Below are positions 12,501 through 37,200 of a stretch of 64,000 nucleotides of DNA, one piece after another. The stretch comes from Laetmonice hystrix (taxonomy: Eukaryota): NCBI GenBank assembly GCA_965235115.1, contig OZ249436.1, positions 64,418,001-64,482,000 on the forward strand, written 5' to 3'. A program made the position numbers and the translations under genes. Under the pieces are notes generated by a model that made no database searches, was not told the DNA's origin, and saw nothing but the letters and a program-made list of their open reading frames with translations. The first letter of the stretch is position 1. Every line of letters starts with the position of its first letter.

Positions 12501-15500
12501 AGAGAGCCCAAAGTTTTTCTTCTAATCTCGTATCCCCTTGGTGCTGATCTGACTTCGCATAAGTGTCCAGTGTATGTTCAGCGAAGACAAAGGCCAATGC
12601 AATTTAACACTCCCTGAGGGCTACGACTCTGTCAAATAGATGTGAGGCGCCCGGGCCTTTGAAGTATGCTTCCCAATGTAATGCACGTCTGTTATAAGAT
12701 TTTGCTAACGAGGTAGTGCTAGCGTAAAGGGATAAATGTAGCAATTCTATTGGGACCGGCTGAGGGCAAAGAAAGGAGTCTTGGACTCTCTTCCCAATTT
12801 GCTCTGCCTTTTTGGGTAACTACGTCGGTCCTGCAGCCATATCACCCCACCGACTCTCCACCTTCACCAACATATCTCCATGCTCCCGGGGTTTACAGAG
12901 TTTTCAGACACAAATCAACTCTTACTCCTGCTCTTACAATCTGTGTCCTTGTAGAGTTTGTTACTTTCATCACCATCACTAAATTTACTAACTTTGTATT
13001 TTTTTAGCTTTGGATAAGATGCAAGATTTCCGTCGTTGCGAGTTAACCATGGCGTAGAACTGAGGTCGTAAGGGGGCAAGAAAATTGACTGCCTCTTCTT
13101 TAGAACATCTAACTCTGCTGTGACAAACCACTGACCTTGACTTGTGTTTGGCCTTGCAGTCGTCCTCTAAACGTCGCTTGGCCTCCTCCAACTGTGTTGT
13201 CGGGTTGGGCGGGTTGAGGGGCGGCATGGAGGGGTCCTGGATGATGGGCTGGGCAGGTAGCACCAAAGGTCCTTGGTGATTCACAAAGTCGGCGGGCATC
13301 ATCGAGTGGAAGCTACGATCCAGCGAACCAGAGCGACTGGCATTGTACTGTACTGGCTTTTTGCCCAAACTGGAATCATATGAAAGGAAACGGATTATAT
13401 ATCACTGACAGAATTCACTTGGAAATATAGAGTCGCATGCACAAAGGATAAAAAAGAAATACTCAGGTGCTGTTCCGTAAGAAATACATTTCAGAAAGAC
13501 CTCAAGGGATTATCTCTTGGCTGTGAAGCGTCCGTGGTTTTGATCTCCAGAGCTCTAAGGGACAACGGCAACTTTTGTGTGCATTGCCTGTCTTCTCTGA
13601 CTTGAAAGCTTTGGAGCAAGGAGACAAGCACTGAAGGCTGTGATGTCAGACAGCCCTGCCAGGAGACGGACAAAACGTGACATCATAAGGCAGCTTCACC
13701 TCCTGTGAAGGCCACCAAGATAGCCCTCACCCCCACAAAGTGGTGGGCTTTCTGCTAGGAAATCACTTTCATCAGCATAGGATGAGGGAAAAAAAGAGGT
13801 GACTTTCCCATTTCCCTGCCAACATGAAAAGAAAACCGTGAATCATAATTAAAACGTGTACTTTAAAAATCTTGCCAACAAGCGGGCCACCAGTAAGGAA
13901 GCGCTGGTCAGGATATGCCAGACCATCATCAAAGTTCTCTTTGGGCGGCCACATGAAAGCGAAACTGGACCAGGCCTGGGTGTCGATACATGCCCCCACC
14001 TTTGAGGCGCTCTCATAAAGAACAATAAAGATTGCAATCTCTTGGGGAGAAGCTTGCTGCCACTAGAGCAGGCTTTGAAAGGGGCTTCACTGGCGTTGAC
14101 GTCGACAAGATAACCGACGGATCATCACTGATCTTTTTCCCGCCACATGAGACGGAAGCTAACGGCAACTGTAATTAAAATTAGCTCTTCCACGGCCACT
14201 ACAAAGGGCCAAGCATTTAACAAAAGGCTCCCTGAAGTGGGTGATTGTCGTCTTTGTGACAAGCACCGATACAGGGCTGGAGGGATTGGCTGCTCCTTGT
14301 TTACCACCGCTTTCCTGGCGGGAATTCACCTCGCGAGGGTCAGGCTACAATAAGCATTCGGAGCAAACCTTTTGTGTCCATCTACCCAATCAAACAGAAA
14401 GGTTGGTAGCAGTGAATTACTTTCCTTACAAATTTGGTTCGGATCCGGCACTAAGTGATATGATCACATCAAAGGCAGCCAGTTGAGCAGCCGACATCAA
14501 AGTGTCCCGTGCCCTCGGCACGTTAGGAAGCACGTAATTGTCGTAAATGTCTGCATTTACTCGAGGCAACTTATTTTGATAATGTAATTCTGGCGATTGA
14601 TCTGTCAAAGCGGCCAGGCCGGCTGTGATCGTCCCAAGGATCAGAGTGCAGTCCGCCTGCCCTGGGCACAACACGGCAGAGCAATGCATGTGACCGGCAG
14701 CCCGACCTGGGCCCAATGACAGGCGACGGCTGGCCGTTACAATGGTCAATGGACGTTGGACAGCGCCCGGCTGTGAGGTGGCCGCTGGCCTTTCTAACCC
14801 CCTCCCCTTGCCACCACCACTCTGGTGGTGGGTGGTGGCGGTGGTGGTGTTCATGACAGCCGGTCCTGCCGACTGATCACAGCCTGCCGCCATGGCCCGC
14901 CACTGATCATCAGTTCTCAACTCACGCCTCCAGGGTGCACCACTAAACACTCACATGACACCCCGTCTCGTACGGCCGTACGTACGACCACCACGTACGG
15001 CCGTACGTACGACCACCAACTCTGTCACACACCTCAAACTCTTCACATCCTAGACGCTACTACCAACGCAATCACATTCAGCCTCCAATGGGAAAACATG
15101 AAGACCATTTTGTAATGCGCCAGTTTGGAATCCTCCCTCGGTCGTAGTGTCCTGTATAAAGGTGACGAACTCGTAAACTAATTAGGACCAACCCCAATCG
15201 TCTTCAAAGCCAAGCCGTGATATCCACGGGGCCTGTTGCCTTTGACCACGTGCCGTATGAATTTCACATGATGCGTTTTAGCAGACTCCACCTATTACAT
15301 TGACTGCCTAGCTGCATGACCAGGATACAAAGCACCGAGTGAAAAACACATGAAAAGAACAGTTAAAAGGATCCCGTCAGATCATAACCCACCAGTTCCG
15401 GAGGGCACGGCACACGCTTCACACAGACCAATTTGCACATGAATGGCTCCCCTCTGCATATCAATCACAGTCACCTTTTAAAGCCAATTTGTCCTTTGTT

Positions 15501-18500
15501 TTCCTCGCATCGTCAGCGGGCGCCTTTTAATTGTCGGTTAGAATGGCCGTTGGGCAGTCAGAAAAATGCAGAGCAAGAGGGAAGGCGCGCGGCCTTCTCA
15601 AAGGATACTAGACGCAGGGCAGTGTGCAGTCGGTCTTTTGATCAGCGCTAACAACAGTGCGCCAAGTCTGGCGGCAAGTTTTCCTTAATGGCACCGCCAT
15701 CAGTTCCACAGCACACACAGCAGACTCAATTATCTCTTCACCTTTCACTTCACGTGTATGCCAAGGATGATCCTGGCCATTGCGACCCTATCTAAAACAG
15801 TCAGGCTAATCTCTCCTTCCTGTTTGTAAACGGATTTTTACACTGGTTGACGTTTTTGCAATTATTTGAATAAAGCTGAGTGGACGAATGATAGTAAAAA
15901 GGAAACTTTCAACGTACCCTTGGCCTGAGGATGAGGACTTTGAGGACCGCTTGTGAGAGGAACTCTTCTCCGAACTGTCCGTGGAATACTGTGTGGTGCT
16001 AGGGTGCATTTTATCATTCTCCATCATCCATGCTAATACCCTAAAAAAGAGACGGGGAGAAAAAGAGAATGATGAGTCCGTCATTAACCACTTAAGGTGC
16101 GAGTAGATTAATAAATCTTTAATAACACATCATCACATCATTAAGTGACACGCTCTGATACTGTATTCCCCGAGTGCTACAGTCTCAAGTCAATGAGCCA
16201 AGTTATGGGGCTGTTAGAAGTAATGAAATATTGGTCAACATATCTGTACGAGGCAGAGGCATCATGAAAAAGAAAGCGACCTCCAAGAATTATCCTTCCA
16301 AAACCTCAGTCATCTAACACAGCACACTTTTTTAAGCTGCCTCCACTAATAATTAACAACTTTCTGACACTTCCTTTCAAGTTCAAAGCACATTGAGGCG
16401 GGGACTAAGCCATCAGCACACTTCTGTAGCCGCTGCCCTTTCTTGTTAATATCTAAAGAAACTAGACTTTTGTTCAGTGATTAGCTGCCCGCTGCATGTT
16501 CCTTTGAAGCCAAAGTTGTTTAACCTTGCAGGCAGAGTGCCGAGGGCTAATGCTAGATTGACTGGGCCAGGCAGCAGGCTAACAGCTTCTTTGATCCTGC
16601 CAGCTAGAACAATTACCCCACACTAATCCTTTCAACTTCCTAATTAAGCCCATCTGGTTAACGAAGAAGTTCAGTAATGGTTGGGGCTTCAAGAAGATAA
16701 CTGCTTGTGAAGTTGTGCGGTACTTTGGGCCGATGGTGGGGGGCGGGGGGAGATAGTCGTGTTAAAACTGTAAGTCTCTGTCTCTCCGTCTCGGTGCCTG
16801 ATGTGAGCTGATAACGGTTGTGGCACCAAGAGTTACAGGTTCTCCACCATGGTTGGCATATATCAATGCCACACCCTGGCCTGGCAGACTTGTCTGGGGG
16901 GAGGGGGGAATTTAAACTATCCTCTTCAGGCTGAACACGTTAAAACCGGGGCAAACATTTCCACGTTGTCAGATCTCAGTAGATTAGCTCTATATTTACG
17001 TCTGTCGAGAGCATTTCCACAAGCACGTTCTGCAGACAAGCCGATTATTATGCAAACTTAGCCTCAGCACAGATGAAACGATTTTTTTCTGTGGGATGGA
17101 TTCCAAAACACAGTACTGCAGGCGAGAGACTGCACTTGAACATATTCTAAATCTCCACGCAGACTCCTTAATTGACCTTATATCTACGACTCGCCGAGTA
17201 CACGGCAAACATTCCTTCGACTCCAGCTTCGGTTTAGAAACGTTCAATCAATCTGCACCTTCCCAAGTGCTGTCATCACAACAGAAATGGAGGTTTCTCT
17301 ACCACAAAGCAAGTAGATTAAAGCTTGAGAGAGAGTTGAAAGAGGCAACAACAAAGACGGGGTAGATCTACACTTTCAAGACTCTGAACTACAAACCATT
17401 AATATTCAGTCTGTCTGAGGCAAGCTCTAAATGCATGCACTGAGACTACATGTTGAAAAGAAAAGCTCGGAGCCAACACGGCCATACTTCTTGGAAGTTC
17501 TACATAGATCCGTCCTTAAGTATGAACTTGAAAGGAGCAAACATCTAAAATGTCAATGTTTCTCCGAGGGGTTTCAGTCTCATCTTCAACAACAAAGGCT
17601 TTGCTGAAGTTCCTCATCATTTGCCACTTCATGAACTTTATCCACTCATCTTTAGGCAAAAGCTTTGCAAGTCTCTTTGGGCCTGCTTCTCTCAGGAAAG
17701 AAACTCCTTTAAAGACAAATTTAAAGATTATTCTCGTTAGCAGTCTTTTCTGAATGTAAGGTTTTCTAGAACCAGCCTGAGGGGATGTAAACCAAAAGAC
17801 CCTTAAAGGATTCTCAGTCAAAAACTGTTGCTTTCCTTTTGAGGCGGTTATTAAAGCAGCTTTATGAAGTCCTTGTGTCCTAAATGAAAGCGGTCGTTTC
17901 TGCCTGCTCCTCGTCGATAATCGCCGCCTGCCACGTTGATGACGAGGAATGGCAGTTTTCTGAGTGAAAGCACAAGTGTCATCCCTCCTGCATCTTTTAG
18001 CCTTTGCTTCCCTGGCCGACATAGCCCTGTTGCAAGGCCGCTCTGTATGCCTTGTAATTACACAGGCAGCAACAAGTCTCTAATGTTGAATCAAAGCCTC
18101 GGATTAAAACAATTGTTTCCTTTTATGTGTTTTGAGCGAAACATCATAATGGCCCTCCAGTGGCCACCCAAAGGGATTAATAAGAGGCAGCTTCGATCAA
18201 ATGAAAAACTTCAAAAAGATTCCAAGGGAAATCCTCTAAGACCAGTGCCTGATTACTGGCCTGTGCCATCAAAGTGAGCATTGGGCAGTCGACTTCTGAG
18301 GCAGCCTAATTCTAGGTATAACTACGTCAAGGCAGGTGCTACAACCAGGCACAGCACTTTGATGCTTTGTGTACTAATTGCGCTGATAGATAATTTGAAT
18401 TAAAAAGTCTTTGTACCATTTGATCACCAGGAGCGCTATTACCGCTAAATGGCAGCACATCAAAGAAGCGGCCGTACATCAAGCCCTGGCAGCGACAGCT

Positions 18501-21500
18501 GATATGCATACATCAGAGCCACGCAGATCAGAAGAACAATTTAAATCATATAATCCCCGTTCAAAGACGAGGCCATACTCATCATGGGCCACTTCAAATG
18601 CTGGCCCCAGAACTGCTTTCTTGTAGCTTGGTGGCAAGCCGCTCTGACCCTGCCTGCTGCTCGCTTTTTTTCCTACCCCAACAACCACTTTATGCATGGC
18701 TAATCATTTCCACTATTCACCACTTTCATCGGGGGGGGGGGGGCAGTCCTCCTCCCTCCTTCAACCCCTCTGCCAAACAACGTGTGGATCGGCCTCTAAT
18801 TAGCCAGAAATTTCACGACCAAGATGGGGCAGCAGGCTCCTACTTGGACCCACTGTTTGCTGTGATCATTCCGACGGCCGTCCCTATCTCGTTTGAAGCT
18901 TAGCTACTGAGGCATGGTTCCAGAGTCAGCCATGTATCAAGTGTCGCTTGGGCTAACCGTACTACCGCATCTCCTTGATCCCCTTCACCACTGCAGGACG
19001 AGGTTAAACTGAACGTACTACCACTGCATACGTCGGCCACAGTACTCGGACCGAGCTCAACAACAGTTACTGGCAAAGACGGTCAAAGCTCAATATATTG
19101 TACATCGTCCCATTTGTTACAGCTCTACGTATGTACTACTTGCAGCGTTCTGATTGCGGGCCATCCCTTTACAATGACACTTCTTCGCCACTCACAACAC
19201 ACACTTTAAATGCACTGTCTCCTCTAATACCGCTTGCCCCCTTGGCAATGAAGGCAGTCCTTTTTTGCCACCGTGGTTTGATGGCTGTGTAATTCTGAGC
19301 GTGCTTGTGTCTCCATTGTCAGAGCAATTAGATTGCCTCAAAGTATATAGTGTCTCGATTCAATCACTATCCTTTCATCTTCCGAGGATGGGTTCACTAT
19401 CAAAAGGACCCGACAGAAAACCTATACAGTTGTGGCATGGCTTCACACCAATTTAATCCCCCCACATAGATTTCTTTATGCCGTCCTTTTTCTCTCCTGC
19501 CATATTTCATGAATTACAGTGGTCCCCTTCTAAAACACGACTTTCTCCTGTTCTTTGATCTTGCGGATCCATCTCTTCTCTTCACACATTTTATCAGATA
19601 CTTGTCCGCTTTGACACCTCTCACATTTCAAACAATATGCTTCCTTTCATCTGGAAAAAAAGTAATTTCAATGTGCGATCATTTCCTGGATGATCTCATT
19701 TATTTCACGGCTGCCTCTTTACAAATACCGAATTTCACATCCTTTTATCTCCGGTAAAAACCAATATGGCTGTGTACTTTTTGCCTGCTGTTCCCTCCGT
19801 TTACCAATTATTGCCACCCTCGTCAACAATTCTACTGAGAATACAGTAAATTTAAATGCCTCTGTGCTCTTTCATCTTTGATAGAAAGCCAATAGAACAG
19901 CAACCCCTTTTCGAAATGCCGTCTGTGCCCACTTCAACAAATTTACATTAAACTCTCTCCCAAATATCAATTTCAAAACACTTCTCTTTCAACATTGCCC
20001 ATTAGTGCTTATTGATCTTGTCCGCTAACTCATCAATGAGTTGGTGCTGCTCGGATCTCTCCCAAGTCACACCAGCCACTAATTGGCAAATTGCAGGCGG
20101 ACCTTCAAATTATCAGCCCACCCCCTACCTTCCCTAGTCATTTCACTCTTCCCATGGTATTAATCCAATGTGTTTATTGCACTGCAATCGCCGGTATTTC
20201 TCTGGTTGAGATTTTTAAGGATTTCCAATTGTGAGTTCGCAGTGATCCAAGCGGCGAGTGAGCCTATTGTTGCAAGGCCTGCAATAGAGTGGCCGTGGTC
20301 GGTGGGTCGTCCTTGATCATTTGGTGTGGGTGCCGGCTGGATGACAAGGCGCCAGGCTCTGGTAATGGTGGGTGTACGCCCGCCTGACGACAGGCGTCGC
20401 TGACAACGACCATGGCAACAACAACAGGCGCCACATCACAGGCGCCAAGCTCGGCCCCATTTTACTGGGTGCCTTCAATCAATGACCTGGACCCATCCAG
20501 AACTGCTGGAAGCAGCCACAACTAGAACCAGTTTGGTTACTTGTCATCTTGTTGGTTCCTGTGCCACCTTTACTGAGCCTTTCCATTTAGACAGACTTAC
20601 TCATGTACTTCCATCAAAACGTTCACTTGAGGAATGATTTTCAAGATGCTGAGAGGAAACACATTTCTTCATCTTGTTACATTGATCTATTCATTCAAAG
20701 TAGCAAATGAAAAAAACACCTAAACGTTATTCTGCTCGGCTGACTAATTATTTGATTCATTCAAAAAGATGTGCAAAGGAAAGGTACTTACTTTTCATTG
20801 GTAGGGTTTCCTGTCGGTTCGTACCGCAAGCTTACTCCACTGTCAATATTACTAGTTGCGTCCATGCTCTTTTTCGCATTGGAGCGTTTGGCGTCTCGTG
20901 AACGCCCCCTCAACACAGAATCGTCCCAACCCCGTGGGGTGGTGACGTGAGGGTCCCGTAACCGCGAATCGCGGTAATATTGCATACTCTGTTGTTGTGC
21001 CTCCAACTCGAGGATTTTGCTAGATTTCGAGTCTTTACTCAGATGGTGATGGTGATGGTAATGGTGAACATGTTTATGGTGGTTCTCGTCGAAACCGTAC
21101 ACACCCGATTTGTCCTCACCCATGCCACTGTCAAAGGAGGAGGTGGACATAAAGTGGCTGCCATCTTTGTCTTTTGTCCGCTTGTGGTGCGGCTTGTTGA
21201 ACACAATCCCTGAAACATTGGGCGAAGGGCCAGCAATGGGTCTCCGCCCAGAGAAACTTCTATCACGGTCCCTGCGCTCCGGAGAGTGCCTCCCAGGTGA
21301 GCGGCTTGGGGTTTGACCAGCCGAACTGTCCCATATCCTAGAGCAGTGTTCCTCCAGGATGCTCTGAGCATTGTCCTCCCGCTCCTGCTCGGCCATAGCA
21401 GTTGCCATCAGCTCCATCATGGACACAGACTTGTTGTGTGCCGACATTGATGACTTGTTCAGGTCTTCCTCATCAGTCATCTGCTAAAAAATAACCAGTC

Positions 21501-22217
21501 AAAAATTACTTAAATGAAACAGAAAAAAATACAGTCCAAAACGAACAGATCTACAAAAACAGGTATCATTTTTTACAATTAAATGTTCAGACATGTTTCA
21601 GATTATGTAACAGAAAAATATATAAAAATATGTGAAAAGTCCTGGATGAAAAGTAGTTGTTTTTCTAAAGCAATGTTTCCACTATGTTTATAATGATGTA
21701 CACACACCTTTATGTAAATATACAAGATAACCAATCATTAGGCCACATTTCATATGTTATCCACAGATTCCATATACTGAGAGTATTCCACAAGCCTCCC
21801 CTTCAGGAGTTCTTCATCACGAGCTCTCCCAGAACCCCAAGGCTTCCAAACAACGCCGTCAATATGACAGAAAGCATGCCGCTCGTCTGGCACCCTGAGC
21901 TGATGAATGAATGACTGCAAGCATGCCGCTCGGAGCAGTGCCATGCTGTGAGCAATGATGCTCCCATTGCCACTACACCCAGGTGACGGTGCTGTCAGTG
22001 AATGTGACAACAGCAATCACACAGCCTCCCTCAGTGCCCCACACCGCCAGCAGACAACCCCACCCCTCCCACTGTCTGACATCAGGAGATATTAATCATT
22101 CTCACAGATACCCCCAGACTTGGCACCCTGCTACACAGGTACTGAGAGACCCGGTCTATCTGTCACCAGTTACAGACAGGCTGCACTAGCCTGAACACAA
22201 CAGTCGGCAGGTTACTG

Positions 22218-22260
<43 letters not shown>

Positions 22261-25200
22261 TTGCGTTAGCGACCAATTGTCAATAACAAAACACACATTA
22301 GAATAAAGCAGTGTTGCTAGCAGTGGTGATAAATCTGCGATTATTGGTCACCTTTTCCGGACAGTAAATGGTACGTCAGGTTCCGTACGCTGAATGTGAC
22401 TGTCTGATGTTCTGTCACCTTCTATAACTGATCCCCTGAATTCCCTGACACCACTTCGATCCGTTCACGACACAACAATGCCACCTGGTGGGCACTTCTA
22501 GCTTCAGATTCCTGGCGTGTTGGAGACGGTGGCGGAGTGTGCGCTGGTTAGAGAACTAGTGCCGCTTCATCCCCACTACACCACCACGCGGGCTAGGACT
22601 TACCTGGGCTCTGAACAACAATGGTACGTAGCTTCTACTCTACATTTCAGGTAAAGAAAACCCACAGGGAACAGGGTGAACGAATCATGACTAGATTACA
22701 CCTGTCTCCCGGCACTGCTGGACACAAGACAGACTAAAAATAGCATGTAAGGTTTGGCACTATGCAAACATTATGGCAGCATCCATCGCTATGGATGATT
22801 TCACGGGGCTAACTGATGAATGTGAAAGCTGTATGCTACAGGAAATCACAGTGACGGCTAGGTCATCAAGCGACAGTTTTAACTACCTTCTCAATCTGCT
22901 GTGTTCCCCCAGCTGTCAATCTGGTGGGGACTGAAGCCAGAAAGCTAGACAGGTGTCAAACCGCTCAGCCTGTTCTCTACAGGCTTCAGGTAAGGTTGGC
23001 GTCGCCTGGCTGGCCTTGTTACCGTTGTTACAGCCATCATAGACAGGGATAATTCACTCACCATTCGCTTGTTGTTCACGTTCTCCGCAATCACATCGAG
23101 CTTTCTGCTAACGTTCAGATTATTATAACAATGGTAGTTCCTGTTGTGGTGGTAGCTGCTGTCATGTGTCATTGCTAACTTCCCTCCTTTCGAGGTTGTA
23201 ACGCCCATGTTCTCGAGACCGGCTTTGAGCGCCTGTCGGATTTCATTCTCCACGTTCTCCGACATGACATTACCGACGGTGACTGGCATGACCCCGTTAC
23301 CGTTAGCCAGCATGGTCCAGGCGTGCTGGTCCTCCATGTTGATGTCTGTCTTCTGGTGGTTGGCCATGTAATACTCCGTCCCTTGTCGGTGAATCACCTT
23401 AATCAGTGAGATACTGCTGCCCAAAACAACAGAGTCTCCATCAGACATCAGCTTGAGCATCTTCATCATGAACCCACGCTGCCGCCACCAGTCACCGCCC
23501 TGCAGGCAATAACTGCATCACTACTACAACACTCACTCCAACAATGATGACACTGCGGCTGAACTGGGGTGGACTCGGTTCGCTGAGTGTGACAGCAGCC
23601 GCGGGTAAATATAGACCGCTATCGCTGGAGCCACCTGTCCTCCACCCAAACACAGCGCCGCTCCAAGTCTGTGAGCGATTGTTTATATATGACGCCGGTA
23701 GCTTGTATCACCGCCACCGTACCTATACTCCGGCTAACACGTTCGTTGTTGACGTGCTGCTTGTCGACTCCCTTCGGCCGTGCCTGCCAGCCTGCCTGTC
23801 ACAAAACGCTCATGTATGCTTTATAGTACTCCAACCTCTTCTTTCACTCTTCATGTGATCTCTCCACAAGCGACGCCGGCTCTGACAGTGATAGCCACAA
23901 ACGTGGCGGCCTCCTGTCATTGGCTGAGGTGGCGCCACAGTGCTGCCACCTTCGGGCGAAGCGTGCGTCGGTGCCTCGTTAGATTGGCTGACTGGCTGAG
24001 TCACTCTCTCACGTGGGAGCTTGGCCTCAGATCGTCCCGACAACCATTGATCTGTGAATCCAACTCTACATGTGCAGTGTGCATGACATTTGTTTGGACC
24101 TAGAATCCCGTCCCCAACGTCCACATTATATCCCTAACCCGAATCCTTTAGCAGAGCCGACATTCTTTTTGACATCACCTTAAACTTCGAGTTGCACGAG
24201 GCCAACCACGAAATCCTTCAAAGTCAGCCTGTCCGCATCCGTGGCTTGGACATCGCACTCGAGTGTGTGGAAATTCTGTTTGGGAGATCACATGAAGCCA
24301 CGTTTGGCTATTAAACGCCCCTTCTGGGAACCGGTTGAGCTTTTTAAACCGCCGTCTGTGTGGGCCTACCTGTGCTCCCAGGAATCAATATGTGTTCAAA
24401 GGAGGGCCGCCGGCTTTGATGTGTATCTGATGGCACGATGCGGGGTGCGCATAAAGCGGCCGTAATATCCTTTACCAGGGTATCGGTAATGTTGGTCAGC
24501 AGCCCCGACACCCAGGGCCTTTTGATCCACCCAGGGCAACTCTCAAAGCCACACACAGAGCGCCATCTACTGCTGGCCTGTTTCCTCTGATGTCAACTTC
24601 AAACCAAACCTAAATAGGTTCTAAATCAATCGACAGGGATCAAGTCTTTTCTCATAAAATCAATTAGCTTCGGTATCGGCGGCACTACGCATTTCACAAA
24701 GTTGACACTGTGACTTTATGACGGCATAAAACCACTCGGAATTCCGTTTATTCTGACCTATGTTAGTCCTTGATAAAAATCGGATGTAATCTAAAGATAA
24801 GCCCCAGTGTGTGAACATGGTCGGGATAATCCTTGGCCCAGGAATGATGCTGATCGCCTCGCTCGAGATCCCCTTACCCCACACCTGGGTATGACATTTA
24901 TATAACACACCCAGTGAAATTCTGTGCTTCCATGTACAAATCTGTCAGGACGCCTTGATCTCAGAGGAAGTAAGATCACAGGAGTATGAAGCCTTTCACA
25001 AACGGCTTAATTCCTGACTTTCCCCCTTAAATCCATCTTGTACCAAACAAGTGTTTGCGTTTTTATCCTTTAGCCTTCCTTCTATGCCGACAACCTCCCC
25101 ATTACCCCTCAGCAACTCCCCAAGCAAGGCTGAGGCTACAAAAGCAGGCGAACAAAGCTGACTTTCTTTGTAGTTGGTTATCCTTCCTTAGATCCCTCAA

Positions 25201-28200
25201 GATTAACACAAAAACACTGAAGCTAATCCAGCAATCATCACCATCTAACTTTGTGTCAGGTCGGCCTCGCGCGTCCACTGCCTTGTGATTGCCACTGCCA
25301 GGAAAACTACTAGAGGCCTAATGAGTGGCCTCATTTTCATTTTCACTTCCACAAATACATCTCTTAATCCACCTTCAAAAAGGGGCCTGCAGCTACGGCT
25401 TTCATCCCTCGGTGTTTTCGCCATGCCTCGTCATATGGCCGTCCTTCAGCACGCCAATGTGCCTCTAATGGACGGCCAAAAGATTCCAAATTCAAGGCGC
25501 CTGCCCGCACCGCCGATTCTTAGAAGATTAAACAGACCAGAATATGGAGATCAACTTCAGTCCGCCTCAGATTCGGCGGCATGACTCGCGCTAAACGTGC
25601 GAACACAGAGACTAAACATGGCCAGCGTTGCTCTCACAAAGACTGCCACATAAAACCGAATCAACTCGGCTGGAAGATAAAAAAAGACAAAGAGGCGGAC
25701 GAAACAGCGTTTCCTGTTTTCAGGCGTTTGAATTTATATATTCTGCATGGAAGTTTACCGTTGAGAGGCCCGATCATGTGAGCAGGCTTTCATCTCTGTA
25801 TCTTCTTCATGCTCATTGTGAGGCAGCGAGCGCGAGCTGGGCGAGGCAGCTTTCTTATGCCAACAACATATCCTCAGCTGCTGGTCCATAGCGTCGGCGC
25901 CATCGGGCCCCTTTCATGTCATCGCAATTTTTTCCCATTTTTATAATCCAAATGTGTCTTTTCAGAGAAACAAAGTGTTGGCTCTCTGTTTGCAAATAGC
26001 GCCTGTGCAGTCGGCTAGATCCTACTGTCAAAGGAGATTGCTTTTCCGTCATAAAAGCTATCGAATCTCCTCCCTGGAATTAGGATGATGAGCTCGACTA
26101 TATTCGCATCATCATCAAATTTGTGTTCACCAAACAAAACGTATGATACTGTAACAAAGTACAAAGTTCGAGTAGAGTATACAGATAGTGAGAGAAGTAA
26201 AGATAACACTTGCCTCATGGTAACCTACCTCCGGTGTCGTCATCATCTCTACCAGGTGTTTCATCTTGTCCTGTTCGTCCTTTACTTTGTCCAGGCGCTC
26301 AATTAACATTGTGGCGAACTTGGAGGGGTCAGTCTCCGCCACATTACGATCTTTAGGCGCACGGTCCGTACGCTGCAAGAAGAATAGGTGTAAATAAGGT
26401 ATAAATTCATATAGAAATCTGGGATCGCACCCCTCTCCCTGCCTTGCAATTATCTCATCATAACAAATAACCAGGGTGGAGATATGACAGACTCTCCACA
26501 GAACCCAGGTTCCTAATGTGATTCTTTTATCTGAAACTCCAACCTTACGATATACCTAAAACATAATCTAACACCTTCTTACACCTGGAGTTGTTGCGAC
26601 ATGTTTTTCCCTAACTGACCACCAAGACGGTCTGGTAAGCGGGTATGGCAGCCTGGCAGCATCATTGTTGATGTCATGCAATCCATTACTTCATCAATCC
26701 CACACAGTTGTATACAGAGTGAAGTAGTATCAATACACCTGCCTTCATAAAGTACACCGCCATGCACTGCACACTGGTTAGACTAGCAAACTTATACTTC
26801 AGTTTTAACACAAATAGAGGTACTCTTCAGGCGTCTCAGTTACCTAAGTGGGGAACCTTTGGCGAAGACTTTAATTTTTAATTTGAAGAGTCCCAGTATT
26901 GTTCATCCTCAGCATTATTTTCTCACTTGTATTTTCCAAAGGTCACAGGAAAAAGTTTAACGAATCGCCAAATTCATTTCAGGATTAGCCACTGATGATA
27001 GAATTGAGCTCATTTTGTTGTCGGACATGTGTTTATATGTTACTAGTGCACCACGTGTATCGTGAACTCAAACACTGGGAGTCCTGGCGTGCAGCCAGGG
27101 GATTGGCTGGCGGGCCGTCAGTGGATGACTGGATACTGCGCTGCCCGCCCCGTCCGAGCTGTCCACCCTGGCTTCACAGCCATAACAACTAATTTCAACA
27201 TCAAGGGTATCAGTGGGAAGGGGCCAGCTAATAGTGCGCTCTCACGTCCCCAGAGTGTTGACCTGACCACTGGATCTGGCACGCTTCATTTCACTCATAA
27301 CTTTTACAATATTTCATTAGGCCAACTGTGTCAGACTTAATCCACCAACTCAGCAGCGATAAGCACATTTTCGCCGGGCACCCATATCCACAGGGCCTAC
27401 TCAATTATAACATCCCATGACCAAAACCTTCATACACATTCCATGTCCTGGCGCATGTAGAGAACAAATGCATGCAGATTACCATCAAAGCCGACAATGC
27501 CCTTCCGTGTCGGCACACTACTCGCGGACAACAATGAGCATATGCAGATGAGGCAACAACTTCAAAGGTGCCGCCGCACTTGGGGCATAAAAGGCCCACT
27601 CATAGCACGCATGAAGTCAGGGGTGCAAGCCTGCACGGCACAATGGTGCTCACTGTACGGGCCCAGATGGCGACAACACCACCACTGCCGCACCTCAATG
27701 CTGCCTTGCAATTATCAGTAAAACACCACCGGCTTCACTCTACTTGGTATTAACACCACTCTGCTCAATTTAGTGTGTATAATGAAAAATTGATCTGACT
27801 GCTGAAAAGTTGCAATTTGTGGGCTGGCAGCTCAGCGGCGGGTAATCTCATCAGGGCTGTCAATGAGTGACAGGCTCGCCATATGGACGGGGGTGGGAGG
27901 GATCCACACTGGGGGCCGATTATAGGCGTGACGAGGATCAACCATTGTCCACCGACCCAATATTCACAAAGTGTGCCGTTCCAAGTGGAGTCTCTCATCC
28001 TTTCACATTATATCGGATCCCTAAGTGAATATTCACCGAAGCAGGGGCAAGAAAAGGAAGAAACCCAAATTCAGAACTTTTAGTACGGAACTCTGCTATC
28101 AACCTACACCATGAAACTTTTTAGACACGCTCACCTCGAACTCAGTCCCGATAATGGTAAAAAAAATAGAGTACTAAACATATACTACTTACCGGAATGA

Positions 28201-31200
28201 AATTGAGTTGGTTGAGTTCAGGACACTTGTTAAGCTGTGCATTGCGATGCATCGCCTTCCGATGCTGTTTCCATTTTTTGCTGCCGAACGGTGGGCCTTC
28301 TCTGCCGTCTCTGTAAGAAGAAGACGTTGTGACACCATGAGATCCTGCCTACTGTATACAGACACCTTCACAAACTGTCACGAGTACCCTCACAACCAAC
28401 CCTTATAGCAATCACCCTGCACCTGTCCTATGTTCAGAAAATAAAACTTGGCTCATGACGGTGGGAGGGTGGGATGGGGGGCTTTGACTCGGGTTCGTTT
28501 AACTATAGTAGGCCTGTACCTAAGGATAAAGGTGGTTACTGGCGAGTTGGGGATGGGGCGGGTGGAGGAGGACATGAGCAGCTCACCAAGCCGAGTATCC
28601 GACCAGATCGTAGTATTAAAGCTGTGAGGCGCCTCCCCGCTCACTGTTCAACCACTAACCAACCAACCACCACCAGCCTCATCCCAACCATTTGGTCCGG
28701 GAGTCATTCGGTCGGTGATCAAAGGCTTCCAGTACCGATGATCACAGGGGCGGGCTCCCGATCACCAGCGGTGGGGATCGAGTTGTGAATTGGCCTCCTC
28801 CTCCTCCTGCCGCCCGTACCCACTGCCGTCCGCGTGTTGACGCAGCCGTACCTCTCATACCGACGGTTATGTCATAGGTTTGTGGTGCCCGCCGCTCACA
28901 GCCGACCCCCGGATCTGAGGATCAAGTGATTTCACCTTGCCTTTCTATAACGAGGCCTTCACTTGTTGTCAGGCTCAGCAATCGACATTACCAGTAGATC
29001 TACTCTGGCCTTGTACGATAGACGTCATTAGGGGCAGTGTTACGTATCATACAAACTGTTTGTTAGGGACAAAATCTAACTAAGGGACTTAAGATGGAGT
29101 TGAGATCACAGGGGATGGAAGGCGGGCATTTCCGAGTCTCTTTGAACTGGTGAAAAGCAAGATAAACAGACAAAACAAATAAACTGCTGCTTCCCCCTTC
29201 TTACGGCGACACGTGATAGGTCTTGTGCTGATCTTACACGAAAAACAGTCGAAGGTGGGCTGAAAAATCGCCTTCAAAATCTACTTGTGGGTTGTTGCCA
29301 ACGCCCTCGACCATGCCCCTTAACATCTGGGGGTGAGTTTGGGGTGGTGATGGCCTTGGGGTATAGAGATGTGGGGTTGGGTGGTGAGTTTGGGGTGAGG
29401 GTTAGTCATCTCTAATTAGCCCTATTGGGCGGTGGTCATCTCTGTAACATTGCCAATCTGAGCGGAGCCGTGCGTGAGGCGGTTCTCTTTGAGGTCTGTG
29501 GGATCGAAGTGGCTCTGGCCGGAGTCAGTGTGGGCGGGGGTAGGGGTTAGGGGGACGGGTGGGCGGCGGCATCCAGCCACAAAGGCTACACTTCTCCCCC
29601 GGATTCTCTCTGATCTTCCCCGCCACAACCCCGACAAACAGAATCTCCTCACTAACCGAATCAGCACGGCCCTTACACTGCCGGTTCATGGGGCCCCGTG
29701 CCCGCTGACTCGGCCCACACACACCCTGACACAGTGTCAACACGCCGCCACTGACCACCCGAGCACGTGTAATTCACCCCCCTCCCCCGCCCACACTCCA
29801 TACGGCTGTAACCGATCTCCCCTAACTCTCCGCCGGTCCTATCTCTCTCACCGTGTACCGGTCTCAACACAACCCCGTACTACTACAGTTCAACATCAAA
29901 GCTTGCTCGTTCTAAGCATTCACTTCTATCTAAGTATCTGTTAAATCATGAAAACACATAAAGCATATCAATGACAAAGGAAATGAAATCTTGCACCAGT
30001 CATTCATGCATATAACATTATTCCTACGTACATTAGCTCATATAAGTAACATCTTTCCGGTGCGTTAACCCCATCAGTTATTAAAAATACAACAACTGAT
30101 ACATGCAAGTATTTCAGATTTTTCAAAACATGGCAATATCGTTATGTACTCCGGTCACTGAAACATCTATTCCAAAACGCTGGGATGTGGATCTGAAAAA
30201 GATTTTAATGAATATTAAAACCAAAGTCATAATTCTGTCACTAGGGCCATTACTCTTCTTCTAAACAAATTATCTGCGGGGCCACCCGCTTTCTTTGCCT
30301 TTGTTACTTGCCACGTCAATACATAAAACATCAATAAACACTGATTGTTACTCTGTGGCGAATTGTAGTTGATCGTCCATTGATGCCGCTTCCTTTGATG
30401 TTGTAATGGATGAGTTCGGGCTGACCCCTAGTGGCAGATCATGACATCAACTTTTGATACTGTCTCTACCTTTTGTAACTTGATCATCAGCCGTCAACTT
30501 TAAGTCCCATGTGTACCACAACACCTGCTCTGAACCCCAGCTAGCTTAAGTGTTTAACCAACATAACACTTTAAATCCATTCCTCAGAGAATATATAGTC
30601 TGTCAGCAAGTGTTTAAGTCTGCCCGTCGGCCTTTTGGTTGCCGTGTCGATTTGAAACAATTTCGGCAGAGCGCTGGCTCGGTCGAGCCTGGTTGGTTCG
30701 ATATAAACCGAACCGCAGCCGACTCCTGACAATCACTTGTCACAGGGGAACTTAGATCTACAGAACACACGATTTCTCTCATTGTTTATCAATCAAAACA
30801 TTCTGAAAACTGAGTGGATATAGAAAGATGATGAGATCTCGTGCAAGCAGACTACCGTCGTCCAATCGGTCTCTGAGGACGGAGTGTGTATTATTGTAGT
30901 GACCAGCTAACAGTGGAAACAAAACCGTCCCGCCACGCCTCGGTGACTCTCCCTGGTCCCCCAACATCCCGACACTCGTCGTTATGCCTGAGTGGTTCAC
31001 CCTCACGACCACCACCACCCGTACACGAGCAGGACTCTAGGGGAGGGTGTGATGACGCAGGAATGCACACACGGGTAGGGGAGGGGTAGGAACACCCCCC
31101 CCCCACCCTCACCTGTCACTCTCCTTTGTACACCTCCCCTTCCATGTCGGGCGACGGGGGAGCGTCTCACAACATGTACAGGTATGTCTCCGTCCTCACA

Positions 31201-34200
31201 ATGCTGGCTGGTTGGAGCTTTGATCTTGGTCATTGTCGGCAACTCGACGCCACCGGGCACAACAGGTGGTACACAAGGCGTGACCCTACAGCTCTACGGT
31301 TTACTTCCCAACCACTGCAACCCCTCGGGCGACCTTCGACTAATCACATTACATATGGATCCATGACCAGTTCTCTCAAATCATCACTCATACACACTCC
31401 TAACAATGTATCTCGTTTAATGTACATTTTTTACCGGTTCCCCCCAACTATTCATGGTGCGCTTCGGCTATATTGGTACTCGCAACAATCCATCTTCAAT
31501 ATTTGCCTCGGTGGAATACACTTTACTGTAATAGTCCTAAGTGACATGTCACATCAAAAAGGCACTTTTCATCAATCATAAAACGTCCCCGAACAAGTAA
31601 AGTTCACAGCATGTGAAATGCGTCCATGATTTGATCTCTATGCTGTTTGCTATGGCTCAGGTCAAGCATGAGAAATATCACCGAGACCCATGGCCATTGA
31701 GATCATATGTGGCATAGCTTTGCGCACATAACCGTGGCTTTTTGAGGTAGTCCCTCCATGCTCGGCGGCCCCTGTCCCCAAAAGCAGCAGGCCCGACCTT
31801 TGACCCACAAACAACATCAAAGGGACCGACACGGCGCAGTTGTCGGCATGTCGGCACGGTCTGCACAAGGAGACTCCGGTACACACACGGGCTCGCTCGG
31901 CCCCCTCTCACTCCCCGCCAGGGTTGTCAATCACCTACCAAACAGTCTCCCTTCAAACTTTACACTGGTAGCAAAATGAATAGGCCCAAACTATCTCTAC
32001 TATCAAAACCAACTCGGCAACCAACTTTTCCACCCATCACCCACATTTTTTGTCTGATCTTCCGATGGCATCATCGCTATTTCCAAGTGAATGTAGCAAT
32101 TGATACAGGTTAATAAGGCGCCTTGAAGATAAAATTTTAGTTTTTTTTCTGCTGGCAGGGTCGGGAAGAACAGTTAAACGGTCACGCCATCACTGGAGGG
32201 CTGGTATGTGTTCTTTCAAGATGCGGCAGTGGGGTGGGTAGGGGACAATTCGAACTATTTAACCCACTGACCTAACCGTGAGCCAAGCCACAACATGTGC
32301 ATACACTGCCTGTTCCACTTTTTCATCTTGTATAACACTCAACGATTTGTCCCTGCTGCCTTTCGTGGAGTCGACACCTAGTCCTTATTAATCTGTGGAT
32401 TCTTCCCTACTGTATAATAGAACAGAAAAAAATTCAATCAAGGAAAATCCAGACAAAGCTCCGAAAGGGTCTCTAAAACCATAACGCTACGTGTCCCTTA
32501 CAAAGTGACGCAGTCTAAAAGCTCCGAAATAACTACCCCACCGATTAGAGGGGACTTCACCGTGCGTTAAGCACAGAACAATACCAGTTTGTGACAGTCT
32601 GCCATTGAGTCATCAGTCTGTACTCAATAGGAAGCAAACCAATTATATTCTCAGAAAATTGCTTCACGACGCCACTTGCAAAAATGGAAAATCAATGGAG
32701 AAGAAATGCCGCAATCTGAAATCACGTGCAACTTTTCCACATAACTATATCCTCATGCATTTTCCCTCCAATTTGCCCATTTATTATTGTTCTTCGGGTA
32801 CTTATTTCACAATCAAAATCACTTGGTAATGGACACTCATTTGATGTTTGGGAAAATAGATTCCTGCTAAATCAAAGGGCTCAATTAAACAGAAGAATTG
32901 TTCAGACACACATAACATCCATCAGCTAGGATTGATGGGAGGTAAAAGCAGCCCAATCGTGGCCGTTTTATTTCACTTTCCACATACGGGACAGATTGAA
33001 AATTCTAGTTGCTGTCCCACACTAATTTCGCCATAACCAGTCCGCACATGCTATACAACGATTGACTTCAAAAGCCATTTGCTCACAAATGGAAAGACGT
33101 TATCATCATTAAACACTCAACGGTACCCGCGGCCTGTAATAATCCACCTAACAGCATTAAACCTGCCCAAGCAAATTAAATCTTGCAACAACTTGACAAA
33201 TATATGGTCTCACAAAATGGGACCTGATAATCGCAATCATGAAACGAGTCTGCGGGGTAAAAAAAAGGCATTACACAGGAGTTTGCAATTGCAATTTTTC
33301 TACCCTTCAATGGAGGCAGCACCGCAGCGATGTAAATAATACTTGTAAGAAAGGTTAACTATTTTTTTGCATGTTTGCCAATAAAAAAAACCCAGCCGTA
33401 CTTATGTGCATGGGACGCCCATGCACTAATGGCAGAGCAACTTGGGTACACAGCACCGACCCACAAAGGCCACGACCAGATGCATTGATGATAACGACAG
33501 ATCAATCAAATACAATTATATAAGCATACAATATTGCAGATTAAAACGATTCACGACTTCAAAGGGATTGAGTGGCGTGGCCATCCTATCAAGGTCAGTG
33601 TTATTACGGGACGACAAAAGGGGGGCTGGGGGTGTAGTACACTTCATTAGTACTGGCTCTGCCCCGTTTCGGCTGTCTCACCCCAGTCCTTGTTTTAGTA
33701 CCGACCCACCGTTGGCTGGCTGTATCCGCACCAACCTCCTCCAGTATACAACAGCGGCCATTGTTTTGCATTTTTGACAACCTTCGCCTCCTCTGGACAT
33801 AAAAAAGGGCCTGCACAACCAAAGTTTATGATGGAACACGCACTTCAAAGCAGCGCGTGAGAAACATCAAAGGCGGTTGCACGAGGCCCGGCATTAGACT
33901 GTCCTACCTGTATCACAGGCGACACGCAACCATTACGGGGCATTTATGTCGGTATCACCACAAACTTCCCTCCCTACTTATTGCCATTAGAAGTAACATT
34001 TTTATTCATATATCAAAGGATGCCCCCAATAGCATACTAAAAGCTCCGGGGTGCACACTGCTGAGAAAATCAATGGCTTCATAGTCATCTCGGAGTACCC
34101 TTACCGTCTCTATACTGTCAGCTCTGACAGGCTACAGTTAAATAGTGTCCGGCAAACCTACTACCCAGCCTGAGCACTCTCTCTCAGTGGATTGTGCTGG

Positions 34201-37200
34201 GGCCAGCTCGAGATGGACACGAGTAGCTGAATCAGCGACCAGGCCATGCTAACTGCCAGCCCAGCATGCTGAGCCGACTTCTAACACAAGGCTAATTGTG
34301 GGAAAACTTTGATGAGATTCATTTATATTTCATGTGCCTTCTGTTTCATGCTCGGCAAACTCTTGTCAATAAGGCCTTGTTAGCGATTCCGTTTCTAGTG
34401 GTATTGGTTAACTGAGTAGCAAGCATTTCAAGCATGGATTCGGGCCACTGTAACAGTTGGCCCCCAGTGTCAGTCGTGAGTCCCTCTCCGGTGAACAGTT
34501 GGTGGCTGTGTATTTCACCGCCGGACCTAAGCGCACAAGGCCCGCTGTACTCTTCGTTACACACGCCATCACGTGCCGTCCCGTGTATATCGCTGAGCTT
34601 ACTTCATCCCTATACTTTCTAGCCTGGCGTTTCCTAGCCATCTCAAAGCCTCGGACCGTCTCGGGTCATTTCTGATCCCCGCCTCACATCCTAATTGGCT
34701 CAGTATATCTATTACCTCCACACAACAAGCTTCTTTTTACCATAAAAGCGCCCGTTCAAATTAAAGGGAAATATTTATCAATATCAAAGAGACTGTCTTA
34801 TACCTAGCTAGAGATAACCAGCTTAGTTCATTTGAAGTTCCCCCAAAGAGGGCTTGTAGTCAGGCAGCTTGGATTGCACCAGCTCGTCTTGAGAGCTCTG
34901 CCATTCGGACACAAAGTATCAGGCACAACAGCGAAGACACACATAAACTTTCACACAGGAGCTACACGCCGCCTGTGCTCTGTGTAAACCCAACACTATA
35001 CTCAACAATTCCCTTTGCGTAACCTGCTTCACATCCATCCACAAACACACACAGAAAGAATAACTTAGCATCATATCCATTACGAAAATTGCATCGATAA
35101 AAGGCATCGAATTAAAATTTCATACTGAGCAGTGGAGATGAAAGACACGGCAAAGACCTATGCTATGACTAGATCACAATTAGCTCGTCGACCCGCCCCT
35201 CTCTGAATACGGAGCCGCCACAGTCTCGGCCCGTCTTCCCACCCACCCTCTTGGGTCTATTGTCTCCTGTCTCCACCCTCACGGGCCGGCTCTCTTTGAT
35301 GCCATAATTTGGTTGTGCCCCTTTTATGCCAGTGCCGTATCCCGTCACCTATTGTGTTTGGCCGCCACCGGAGCCTTTGATCTGACGCCGCGGCCTGGCC
35401 AGATTTATAAAGCCCGGTGTCGGCCTTTTATTTGCTCAGCCCCATATTGATTTGATATCTGTGATTATCAGCTGTGCTTGACCCCAGCAACTCAATGCCT
35501 TATAATGGCAAGATAACTGTAGTGGCTGGCTGACAGCAATGTTGTGAACAAAATGATAGCCCCACCTTACGGGCCCGTTTCCAGCCTTCAAAGCTGGGCT
35601 CTCCGGGCTCTCCTTACCAGCCAAGGCCAACGGGAGCCAACTTTTGTGGCGAGCCCCCCCCCCCCCCCCCCCCACCGTCCGTTACTAGGCAGAGCACCCG
35701 GGAGCCAAACTGTGCACCGTCACCGCCGCCCTGAACTTGTGGGAACCCGGGGCCAGGTGGACGGTTGTGTGGGTAAAAAGTACAGATCCCAACCAAACAC
35801 TCACCGCGCATCAAAGGCGCCGCCGGCCAGCAGCGCCACCAAAAACGTCGCCAGATGGCAGCAGTGGGCGCTTTGATTCGCGCCGCCTGACCCACTTGAG
35901 ATTCCTTCTCCCCTAGCAGCGGCTGACCCACTTGGACAGGGCAAATAGTGGGGCCCCGAGTCGGACCTAGCACCCCCCCCACACACACACACACACAGCA
36001 ACCCCTCGGTCCGGGGCCACCATAGTCATGGCCTCTAGCTTTACAGGTGCCTGCCCGCCAAAGTAAATAACTTGTGAGGAGAGAGTCCCGCTGAATGAAG
36101 TACACGTGTAAACTTCAATTCCTGTTTTCTCCAGACTTGTCTTCTAACACTGTAGTCATAGAAACCAAGCTAACAGGATCTTCTCTTAACCTCAACATTA
36201 AACAAGCAAAGTTCAAACGGCAAATTCTTCACGCGTTACAGAGTGTGGATTAAAGCCAAGAGCCGGTTGAGAGGTCTCACATGAGAGTGCCAACCCAAAC
36301 TTCTGTTCTTTGCTTGCCGCTCTCGTTCTTTGATCACTCCACTCATCTCCGGCAAAGTTTACCTACTTACCTAACCACCGCATAATTATTGTTCCCGTGT
36401 CTCTTCTGCTCCGCCGTCGGACAGAGGTTGAGCATGCGGCTGAACCAAATCTTTAACTGCGTCATGTCGGCGGGCACAGACTGCGGCAGCGGGGCAGGCC
36501 CACACATGTGGAAGGTGTCAATGTTGTCCAAGTAGCCCTGTACTCCATCGAACGAGTGCCACCTTCTCTGCAGGTGGAGTCTGGCTGGGACGAAGGCCAT
36601 TGGGACCACCACGCGGGTCCAGCCACTCATGGGGGCCGGGTGAACCGGTGGATCAGTCCGAACAGCGGGGCCGTCGCACACCAACGGGACCCTGTCGACG
36701 GCTATCTACGGCCAGCCCTGATCATGATTCACTAGATAATAAAAGTTCAGTATCGATCTCCACCGACATCCATCCTCAAGTGCTTTGATCTCAATGTGTC
36801 CTTCCGATCACCGTATCGGCCTCATCCATCATAGTAAACTCCTTGTCTCAAATAAAACTAATATTATATAATTGTAAACTTTGTACTATTCCATCAGCCA
36901 TAATAGGTGGAATCCCGCGTGCGTGGCACGTGCGCGTGACGAGTGGCACGAGGGTCTTGAAATCGGTTGAAATCTTGGAATGCCCGAGTCCCGTACTAGC
37001 AGACTCCGATCACACACATCTATAGTGACAGGTTCACCGTTTCGCATGAATTGTCAGGGCATCATCCTAAGTGTCGAACTTTAAATCCATTGGGTAAATC
37101 CAATCCGTCCCTGAATGGTTTCACCTGTGAGGACACTGAGTACATTGGGAGGGGGTTTGGACGGAGATGGTGTAAGATTATCACTGACTGCTCCGGTAGA

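Follow-up and report, generated by a model that had tools for sequence, protein, structure and literature searches.

Conserved intronic coding sequence in the Axin gene of Laetmonice hystrix and its possible use as alternative first exons

Whether a single Axin locus might encode, besides the complete scaffold protein, shortened forms that lack some of its binding modules is the question raised by a stretch of 64,000 nucleotides (nt) from Laetmonice hystrix (GenBank assembly GCA_965235115.1, contig OZ249436.1, positions 64,418,001 to 64,482,000; the whole stretch is called the window, and position 1 is its first nucleotide). An Axin gene lies on the minus strand of the window, and a preliminary description had pointed to three long open reading frames (ORFs) in its introns, each ending at a splice donor in phase with the next Axin exon, and had proposed that they begin a nested series of isoforms with progressively fewer modules. 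By comparison with related sequences, ORF2 is certainly a conserved protein-coding exon under purifying selection, ORF1 is probably a second such exon, and ORF3 is a chance reading frame. We favour, with moderate confidence, the reading that ORF1 and ORF2 serve as alternative coding first exons, or that each is the first coding exon in a transcript that begins at a start of its own farther upstream.

Two intronic exons and the selection acting on them

The three minus-strand ORFs were found at the coordinates claimed, each with internal ATGs and a GT donor matched in phase to the next Axin exon. Their stop-to-stop extents are as follows, with a slash at the splice boundary.

36705-36370, minus strand: ORF1, 112 codons; donor TTAG/GTAAGT; last exon base 36371
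23517-22948, minus strand: ORF2, 190 codons; internal donor ATG/GTGAGT; last exon base 23062
14950-14429, minus strand: ORF3, 174 codons; donor ATTT/GTAAGG; last exon base 14430

ORF1 leaves 2 nt, which are completed by 1 nt from the exon starting at 28310 (exon 3); ORF2 ends in phase 0, in which the exon starting at 21480 (exon 5) begins; and ORF3 again leaves 2 nt, to be completed by 1 nt from the exon starting at 13369 (exon 7). Length and phase are weak evidence by themselves, because 34 minus-strand ORFs of at least 80 codons are present between 11.0 and 38.2 kilobases (kb), a region of about 50% G+C in which non-exonic ORFs reach 187 and 166 codons, and because every ORF has several GT sites, one third of them phase-correct. 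Donors were scored with a rough matrix of consensus frequencies and ranked among 2772 GT sites. On this scale the canonical exons scored 3.1-6.4 bits, ORF1 7.0 bits (among the best 4 of the 2772) and ORF2 6.2 bits (among the best 9), and the ORF3 donor, at 0.3 bits, lay at background, with 380 of the sites equal to it or above. An origin of ORF1-3 from a repeat or transposon was rejected, each being single copy in its own 627-megabase genome (35 contigs).

Comparison was made chiefly with one relative (REL), for which 47.6 kb were assembled from four loci. The order of exon 3, exon 4, ORF2, exon 5, exon 6, exon 7 and the DIX exon in REL is that of the window (exons numbered as in the gene model below). 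Synonymous sites between the two species are saturated, with a proportion of synonymous differences (pS) of 0.65-0.85, and neutral sequence is therefore no longer alignable. For ORF2 the sequence set comprised five members including the window, with the DNA read for four. Contig pairs of equal coverage within one sample (L004 with L014, and REL2 with L016; 1.6-3.3% apart over the compared stretches) were taken as the two haplotypes of one animal and served as the source of polymorphism for tests of coding constraint. Four sequencing runs were also used, X1-X3 being genomic DNA and X4 a small, spliced, RNA-like run. Over 20600-26500, X4 covers 20791-21223 alone, and neither ORF2 nor exon 4.

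When all 34 ORFs were searched against REL as a control, seven matched at E < 1e-3: ORF1, ORF2, the canonical exons and one alternate frame of exon 5. Among the other 27 the lowest value was E 0.019, over a short non-coding conserved block. The tblastn comparison of the three peptides with a relative, proposed in the preliminary description, thus recovered ORF1 and ORF2 and returned nothing for ORF3. The exons delimited within the two matching ORFs are given here.

23062..23469, minus strand: ORF2 exon, a lineage-specific peptide of 135 amino acids (aa); coding from ATGATGAAGATG, conserved from 23466; donor GT at 23061-23060
36371..36600, minus strand: ORF1 exon; conserved coding from the ATG at 36600-36598 to 36371; donor GT at 36370-36369

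A search of the protein collection with ORF2 returned four homologous ORFs in other assemblies, with 53-75% identity. The alignment contains two near-invariant blocks; all five sequences begin with ATGAAGATG and end in every case at a methionine followed by VS, which corresponds to ATG/GTGAGT, and beyond this point they diverge or stop. At the nucleotide level, similarity to REL runs from the ATG at 23466 to 6 nt beyond the donor. The exon keeps its place between the counterparts of exon 4 (the GSK3 region) and exon 5 (beta-catenin binding), and in both assemblies with context it lies on the same strand 1.3-2 kb upstream of the Axin_b-cat_bind exon. Against REL, the proportion of nonsynonymous differences (pN) is 0.19 and pS 0.65, giving a ratio of nonsynonymous to synonymous divergence (dN/dS) of about 0.15 with dS saturated; the canonical exons give 0.05-0.14.

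Polymorphism gave a consistent picture. The REL haplotypes, 2.8-3.3% different, differ at eight sites in the ORF2 exon, seven of them synonymous third positions, and both single-nucleotide polymorphisms (SNPs) found within the exon in the DNA runs of the window species are synonymous, so that 9/10 SNPs within species are synonymous overall. In the window species, the read-through part just past the donor contains amino-acid replacements as well as two indels, an insertion of 2 nt and a deletion of 9 nt. In a third species, three runs yielded too few SNPs to show whether the sequence ahead of the ORF2 ATG is coding or non-coding.

ORF2 has no paralogue and is unique in its own genome. The new peptides matched no Pfam family, and the ESM Atlas gave nothing usable for them; the AlphaFold model of the ORF2 peptide has a mean predicted local distance difference test score of 36 and no confident fold. 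A profile search of 1.84 billion representative proteins returned the four known ORFs and one low-complexity match. Upstream of the exon, the DNA runs reveal a second allele at 24049-24110, with 9 nt (GGATTCTAG) in place of 60.

The frame of ORF1 is open upstream to 36705 and has a further in-frame ATG at 36630. Its tblastn match in REL is collinear, with 41% identity over 54 aa (E 4.5e-8) and a score of 41.2 bits, against a maximum of 27.3 bits in 300 shuffles of the peptide. The similarity is confined to the frame of the ORF, the match at the nucleotide level extending over just 14 nt. In REL, an ATG is aligned with the ATG at 36600 and is preceded by a TGA 12 nt (4 codons) before it, and the frame closes at a TAG within TG/GTAGGT, a donor that leaves 2 nt as does AG/GTAAGT in the window; in both species, exon 3 contributes 1 nt at its acceptor. 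The REL haplotypes differ at two sites in the ORF1 exon, both synonymous, with no indel inside the exon and several just downstream.

Alternative first exons and competing readings

Alternative first coding exons are favoured because conservation begins at the ATG, while the sequence upstream is not conserved and soon runs into an in-frame stop. For ORF2, in-frame stops lie 10-18 codons upstream of an ATG that has A at -3 in all four sequences with DNA read; for ORF1, the ATG is present in both species and is closely preceded by the TGA in REL. Every sequence examined retains the ORF2 donor, and a phase-2 donor option for ORF1 exists in both species. The spliced products of all proposed forms read through without a stop. 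From this arrangement we infer that translation starts at these ATGs and that the donors join to the next Axin exon. Of the nested series of truncated isoforms put forward in the preliminary description, two members thus remain likely, with selection at the protein level (certain for ORF2, probable for ORF1), conservation from the ATG and donors that fit in phase; the ORF3 member does not.

Several observations weigh against this use of the two exons. Each of the four species has a phase-0 AG after the stop and ahead of the ORF2 ATG, accompanied in REL and L008 by a good pyrimidine tract, and in the window species ORF1 could be an in-frame cassette through an acceptor at 36625, where an AG 25 nt before the ATG is phase-correct. 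REL has a stronger GTGAGC donor 5 nt upstream of its phase-2 donor for ORF1, and this stronger site does not fit exon 3. The case for ORF1 comes from a single relative and an alignment of 54 aa, and X4 holds fewer than 1/20 of the sampled ORF1 words, compared with 37% of those of exon 5. Among the 1.84 billion representative proteins, no longer protein joins the ORF2 peptide to Axin sequence. Upstream of ORF2, no conserved block occurs before 25.3 kb. The ORFs had been described as lying in CpG-rich sequence; the observed/expected ratio of CpG is indeed 0.78-0.91 at the three ORFs against a window median of 0.64, but the enrichment is mild. The likely main 5' region at 56-58.5 kb has ratios of 1.0-1.24, and CpG content and counts of TCF motifs around ORF1 and ORF2 were undistinctive.

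The phase-correct AG sites are also what sustains the alternative that survives best, though we consider it rather unlikely: ORF2, and perhaps ORF1 in the window species, would be an in-frame cassette of full-length Axin, in which ORF2 adds about 146 residues between the GSK3- and beta-catenin-binding parts, and truncated isoforms would be absent. The ORF2 exon is symmetric (phase 0/0), and an acceptor-like ctgcag at 23500 (23500/23499) would define an in-frame exon of 438 nt with a stop-free full-length product. The positions of the ORF2 acceptors vary, however, at upstream distances of 33, 27, 54 and 0 nt from the ATG; the peptides that they would add are mutually unrelated in sequence and differ in length, and conservation starts sharply at the shared beginning of the five sequences. 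In L005, moreover, the best acceptor is out of frame and runs into a stop. As to ORF1, its in-frame inclusion after the RGS exon is impossible in REL because of the TGA before the ATG and because neither AG between the two is phase-correct.

It is improbable, in our estimate, that ORF1 is a conserved non-coding element whose frame is open by chance in the two species, with ORF2 alone real. The modest identity to one relative, the lack of any match to ORF1 in the protein collection, the near absence of its words from X4 and the stronger, out-of-phase donor in REL all speak for this account. It accords poorly with a protein-frame score far above that of the other frames and of the shuffles where the nucleotide match is so short, with an ATG and a donor option of the same phase in both species, and with an exon whose two SNPs are both synonymous and which is free of indels that occur just downstream.

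It is very improbable that ORF1, ORF2 or both begin an independent small gene that lies within Axin introns on the same strand and is spliced to non-Axin exons. Each has its own ATG and no Axin protein in the searched libraries bears either peptide, but the conserved blocks from each donor to the following Axin exon are all short and non-coding, the donor phases suit the next Axin exons, and ORF2 retains its place beside the beta-catenin exon in the two other assemblies with readable context.

The Axin gene model, ORF3 and conserved non-coding elements

The Axin gene was modelled on the minus strand of the window, and its spliced frame runs free of stops from the exon at 53614-52662 as far as the first DIX exon. 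Exons without a Pfam domain were located from their splice sites, from the reading frame and from their similarity to REL, the relative to which the identities below refer.

52662..53614, minus strand: first coding exon of canonical Axin, with tankyrase-binding motif and RGS domain (Pfam); donor GAAGG/GTATGT, 2 nt left over
28193..28310, minus strand: canonical exon 3, upstream of the GSK3-binding helix; 70% aa identity; acceptor takes 1 nt, in the same phase in the relative
26229..26372, minus strand: canonical exon 4, presumed GSK3-binding helix; phase 0/0; 86% aa identity
20792..21480, minus strand: canonical exon 5, beta-catenin-binding motif (Pfam Axin_b-cat_bind); starts in phase 0 and leaves 2 nt
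15918..16040, minus strand: canonical exon 6; 84% aa identity; the loose end of an X4 contig matches the exon start
13136..13369, minus strand: canonical exon 7, the proposed partner of ORF3; 67% aa identity; takes 1 nt
11708..11845, minus strand: small conserved exon that lies between exon 7 and the first DIX exon; donor CAG/GTAAGT; required for the open frame of the model
11280..11453, minus strand: first DIX-domain exon (Pfam DIX)

Membership in the Axin family follows from an N-terminal tankyrase-binding motif and RGS domain (AXIN1_TNKS_BD, E 7.5e-10, and RGS, E 4.1e-25, both in the exon at 53614-52662), together with Axin_b-cat_bind and a C-terminal DIX domain on the same strand and in a single open spliced frame. 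A spliced contig of run X4 confirmed that the exon ending at 20792 is joined to the one starting at 16040. GSK3 binding is presumed for the exon at 26229-26372 by analogy with vertebrate Axin; a search of PDB sequences with this exon returned no match. The beta-catenin exon contains a histidine-rich tract at 21000-21060, whose place resembles that of the histidine run of vertebrate Axin1. On the 3' side of the first DIX exon, a plus-strand tandem array at 7800-8900 encodes repeated peptide units and has a very low CpG observed/expected ratio of 0.12-0.25.

Within this model the third reading frame lies ahead of exon 7, and its 3' end overlaps a conserved element.

14430..14950, minus strand: ORF3, chance open reading frame; no homologue; donor of 0.3 bits
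14416..14508, no strand assigned: conserved non-coding element with two CTTTGAT motifs (TCF/LEF-type) on the Axin strand, starting at 14502 and 14474, followed by conserved TTTGTAAGGAAAG

The preliminary description had assigned to ORF3 an isoform consisting essentially of the DIX domain. This proposal was not borne out: ORF3 has no homologue in the protein collection, its tblastn search found no match in REL across the fully covered intron between the counterparts of exon 6 and exon 7, and its donor is at background level. At the corresponding site, REL has 13-25 open codons ahead of a conserved GTAAGG and no open frame. On this comparison ORF3 is a chance ORF and not a conserved exon.

What is conserved at its 3' end is the element at 14416-14508, which aligns collinearly with REL by blastn (75% over 60 nt) and spans the last 45 nt of ORF3 together with its apparent donor. 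The two CTTTGAT motifs, in the block and its upstream flank, are spaced 28 nt apart in the window and 29 nt in REL, and the downstream TTTGTAAGGAAAG is identical. The element looks like a candidate TCF/LEF-type, Wnt-responsive enhancer within Axin; such an element would fit Axin as a feedback target of Wnt signalling and may thus be a feedback enhancer.

Between 11.7 and 38 kb, fourteen short collinear blocks retain 70-91% identity to the saturated relative. They look non-coding because their indels are not multiples of three. The first two listed here are candidate regulatory elements 1.0-1.4 kb upstream of the ORF1 ATG; for none of the blocks is a strand assigned.

37973-37942 and 37680-37599: two short conserved non-coding blocks (blastn against the relative 91% over 32 nt and 77% over 82 nt, collinear)
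35123-35050, 34788-34755, 33550-33515, 32815-32758, 27783-27743, 27591-27528 and 25420-25318: further conserved blocks, of which 27591-27528 retains a CTTTGAAG motif
19853-19795, 19697-19609, 18406-18364, 18156-18106 and 12745-12567: further conserved blocks

Predicted products and their significance

Used as a first exon, ORF1 would place a new N-terminus of 77 aa ahead of the exon at 28310. The product would keep the GSK3 region, the beta-catenin-binding motif and the DIX domain, would be without the tankyrase-binding motif and the APC-binding RGS domain, and would measure at least 616 aa when counted as far as the first DIX exon. ORF2 would in turn join a new N-terminus of 135 aa directly to the beta-catenin-binding exon at 21480 and the DIX domain, and this form, of at least 587 aa up to the first DIX exon, would be without the tankyrase-binding motif, the RGS domain and the GSK3 region.

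Both module sets have been made in the laboratory. In Xenopus, Axin truncated at residue 331 (Ax331-956), which keeps the GSK3 site, causes axis duplication as a dominant negative, and the effect is abolished in Axin truncated at residue 531 (Ax531-956), which has lost the GSK3 site as well and is inactive (Fagotto et al. 1999, PMC2133179). The module content of Ax331-956 (GSK3 site, beta-catenin site and DIX, no RGS) is the same as that predicted for the ORF1-first product, and that of Ax531-956 the same as for the ORF2-first product. Whereas those are laboratory constructs, the truncations considered here would be natural ones and would carry conserved N-termini of 77 and 135 aa that belong to no known family. 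By analogy, the ORF1 form is a plausible antagonist of Axin and, of the two forms, the only one for which antagonism is predicted. As Ax531-956, unlike Ax331-956, is inactive in the frog, opposition to Axin need not be shared by both natural forms, and the ORF2 form would more likely act through its conserved N-terminal domain. The three-step nested series is accordingly reduced to two members, the second of which is not simply a weaker antagonist, because ORF3 is unsupported and Ax531-956 is inactive.

It is common for an internal start to deprive a protein of a binding module, and the Wnt pathway itself offers the example of TCF/LEF, with dominant-negative isoforms of TCF-1 and LEF-1 that arise from intronic promoters. 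The likeness to the present case lies in a Wnt-pathway gene with an internal start, the N-terminally shortened product of which has lost a single module for binding and is able to act against the full-length protein; the difference is that the TCF-1 and LEF-1 products are transcription factors and Axin is a scaffold, for which the internal start is a prediction from sequence. The difference between isoforms a and b of human AXIN1 is a short internal cassette close to the C-terminus, and both retain all binding modules; they too reflect alternative splicing of Axin, but in the forms predicted here the N-terminal modules would be replaced. The activator Ccd1/DIXDC1, cited in the preliminary description, has a DIX domain without the modules of the destruction complex, and the sole comparable form proposed here, that beginning with ORF3, is the unsupported one. 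Full-text searches, confined to a single library of papers, found no report of Axin isoforms with an internal promoter or a replaced N-terminus. What is probably novel, then, is a set of Axin truncations that would carry a lineage-specific conserved N-terminal domain.

Taken to its full extent, the argument would make this one Axin locus the source of a complete scaffold and of two truncated forms with lineage-specific N-termini, begun at internal starts near conserved TCF-type elements, so that Wnt activity might switch between the brake and either a competitor or a re-targeted beta-catenin/DIX adaptor; we regard this scheme as a doubtful conjecture.

How the dose and the modules of Axin are tuned is a central question in Wnt signalling. 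Axin deletions without the RGS domain have served as artificial dominant negatives for 25 years, and a natural isoform of this kind under selection, if true, would mean that animals use the same trick. The 135-aa peptide of ORF2 is a conserved segment without a family at a defined place in a well-known pathway gene, and Axin gene models in this lineage miss at least one coding exon.

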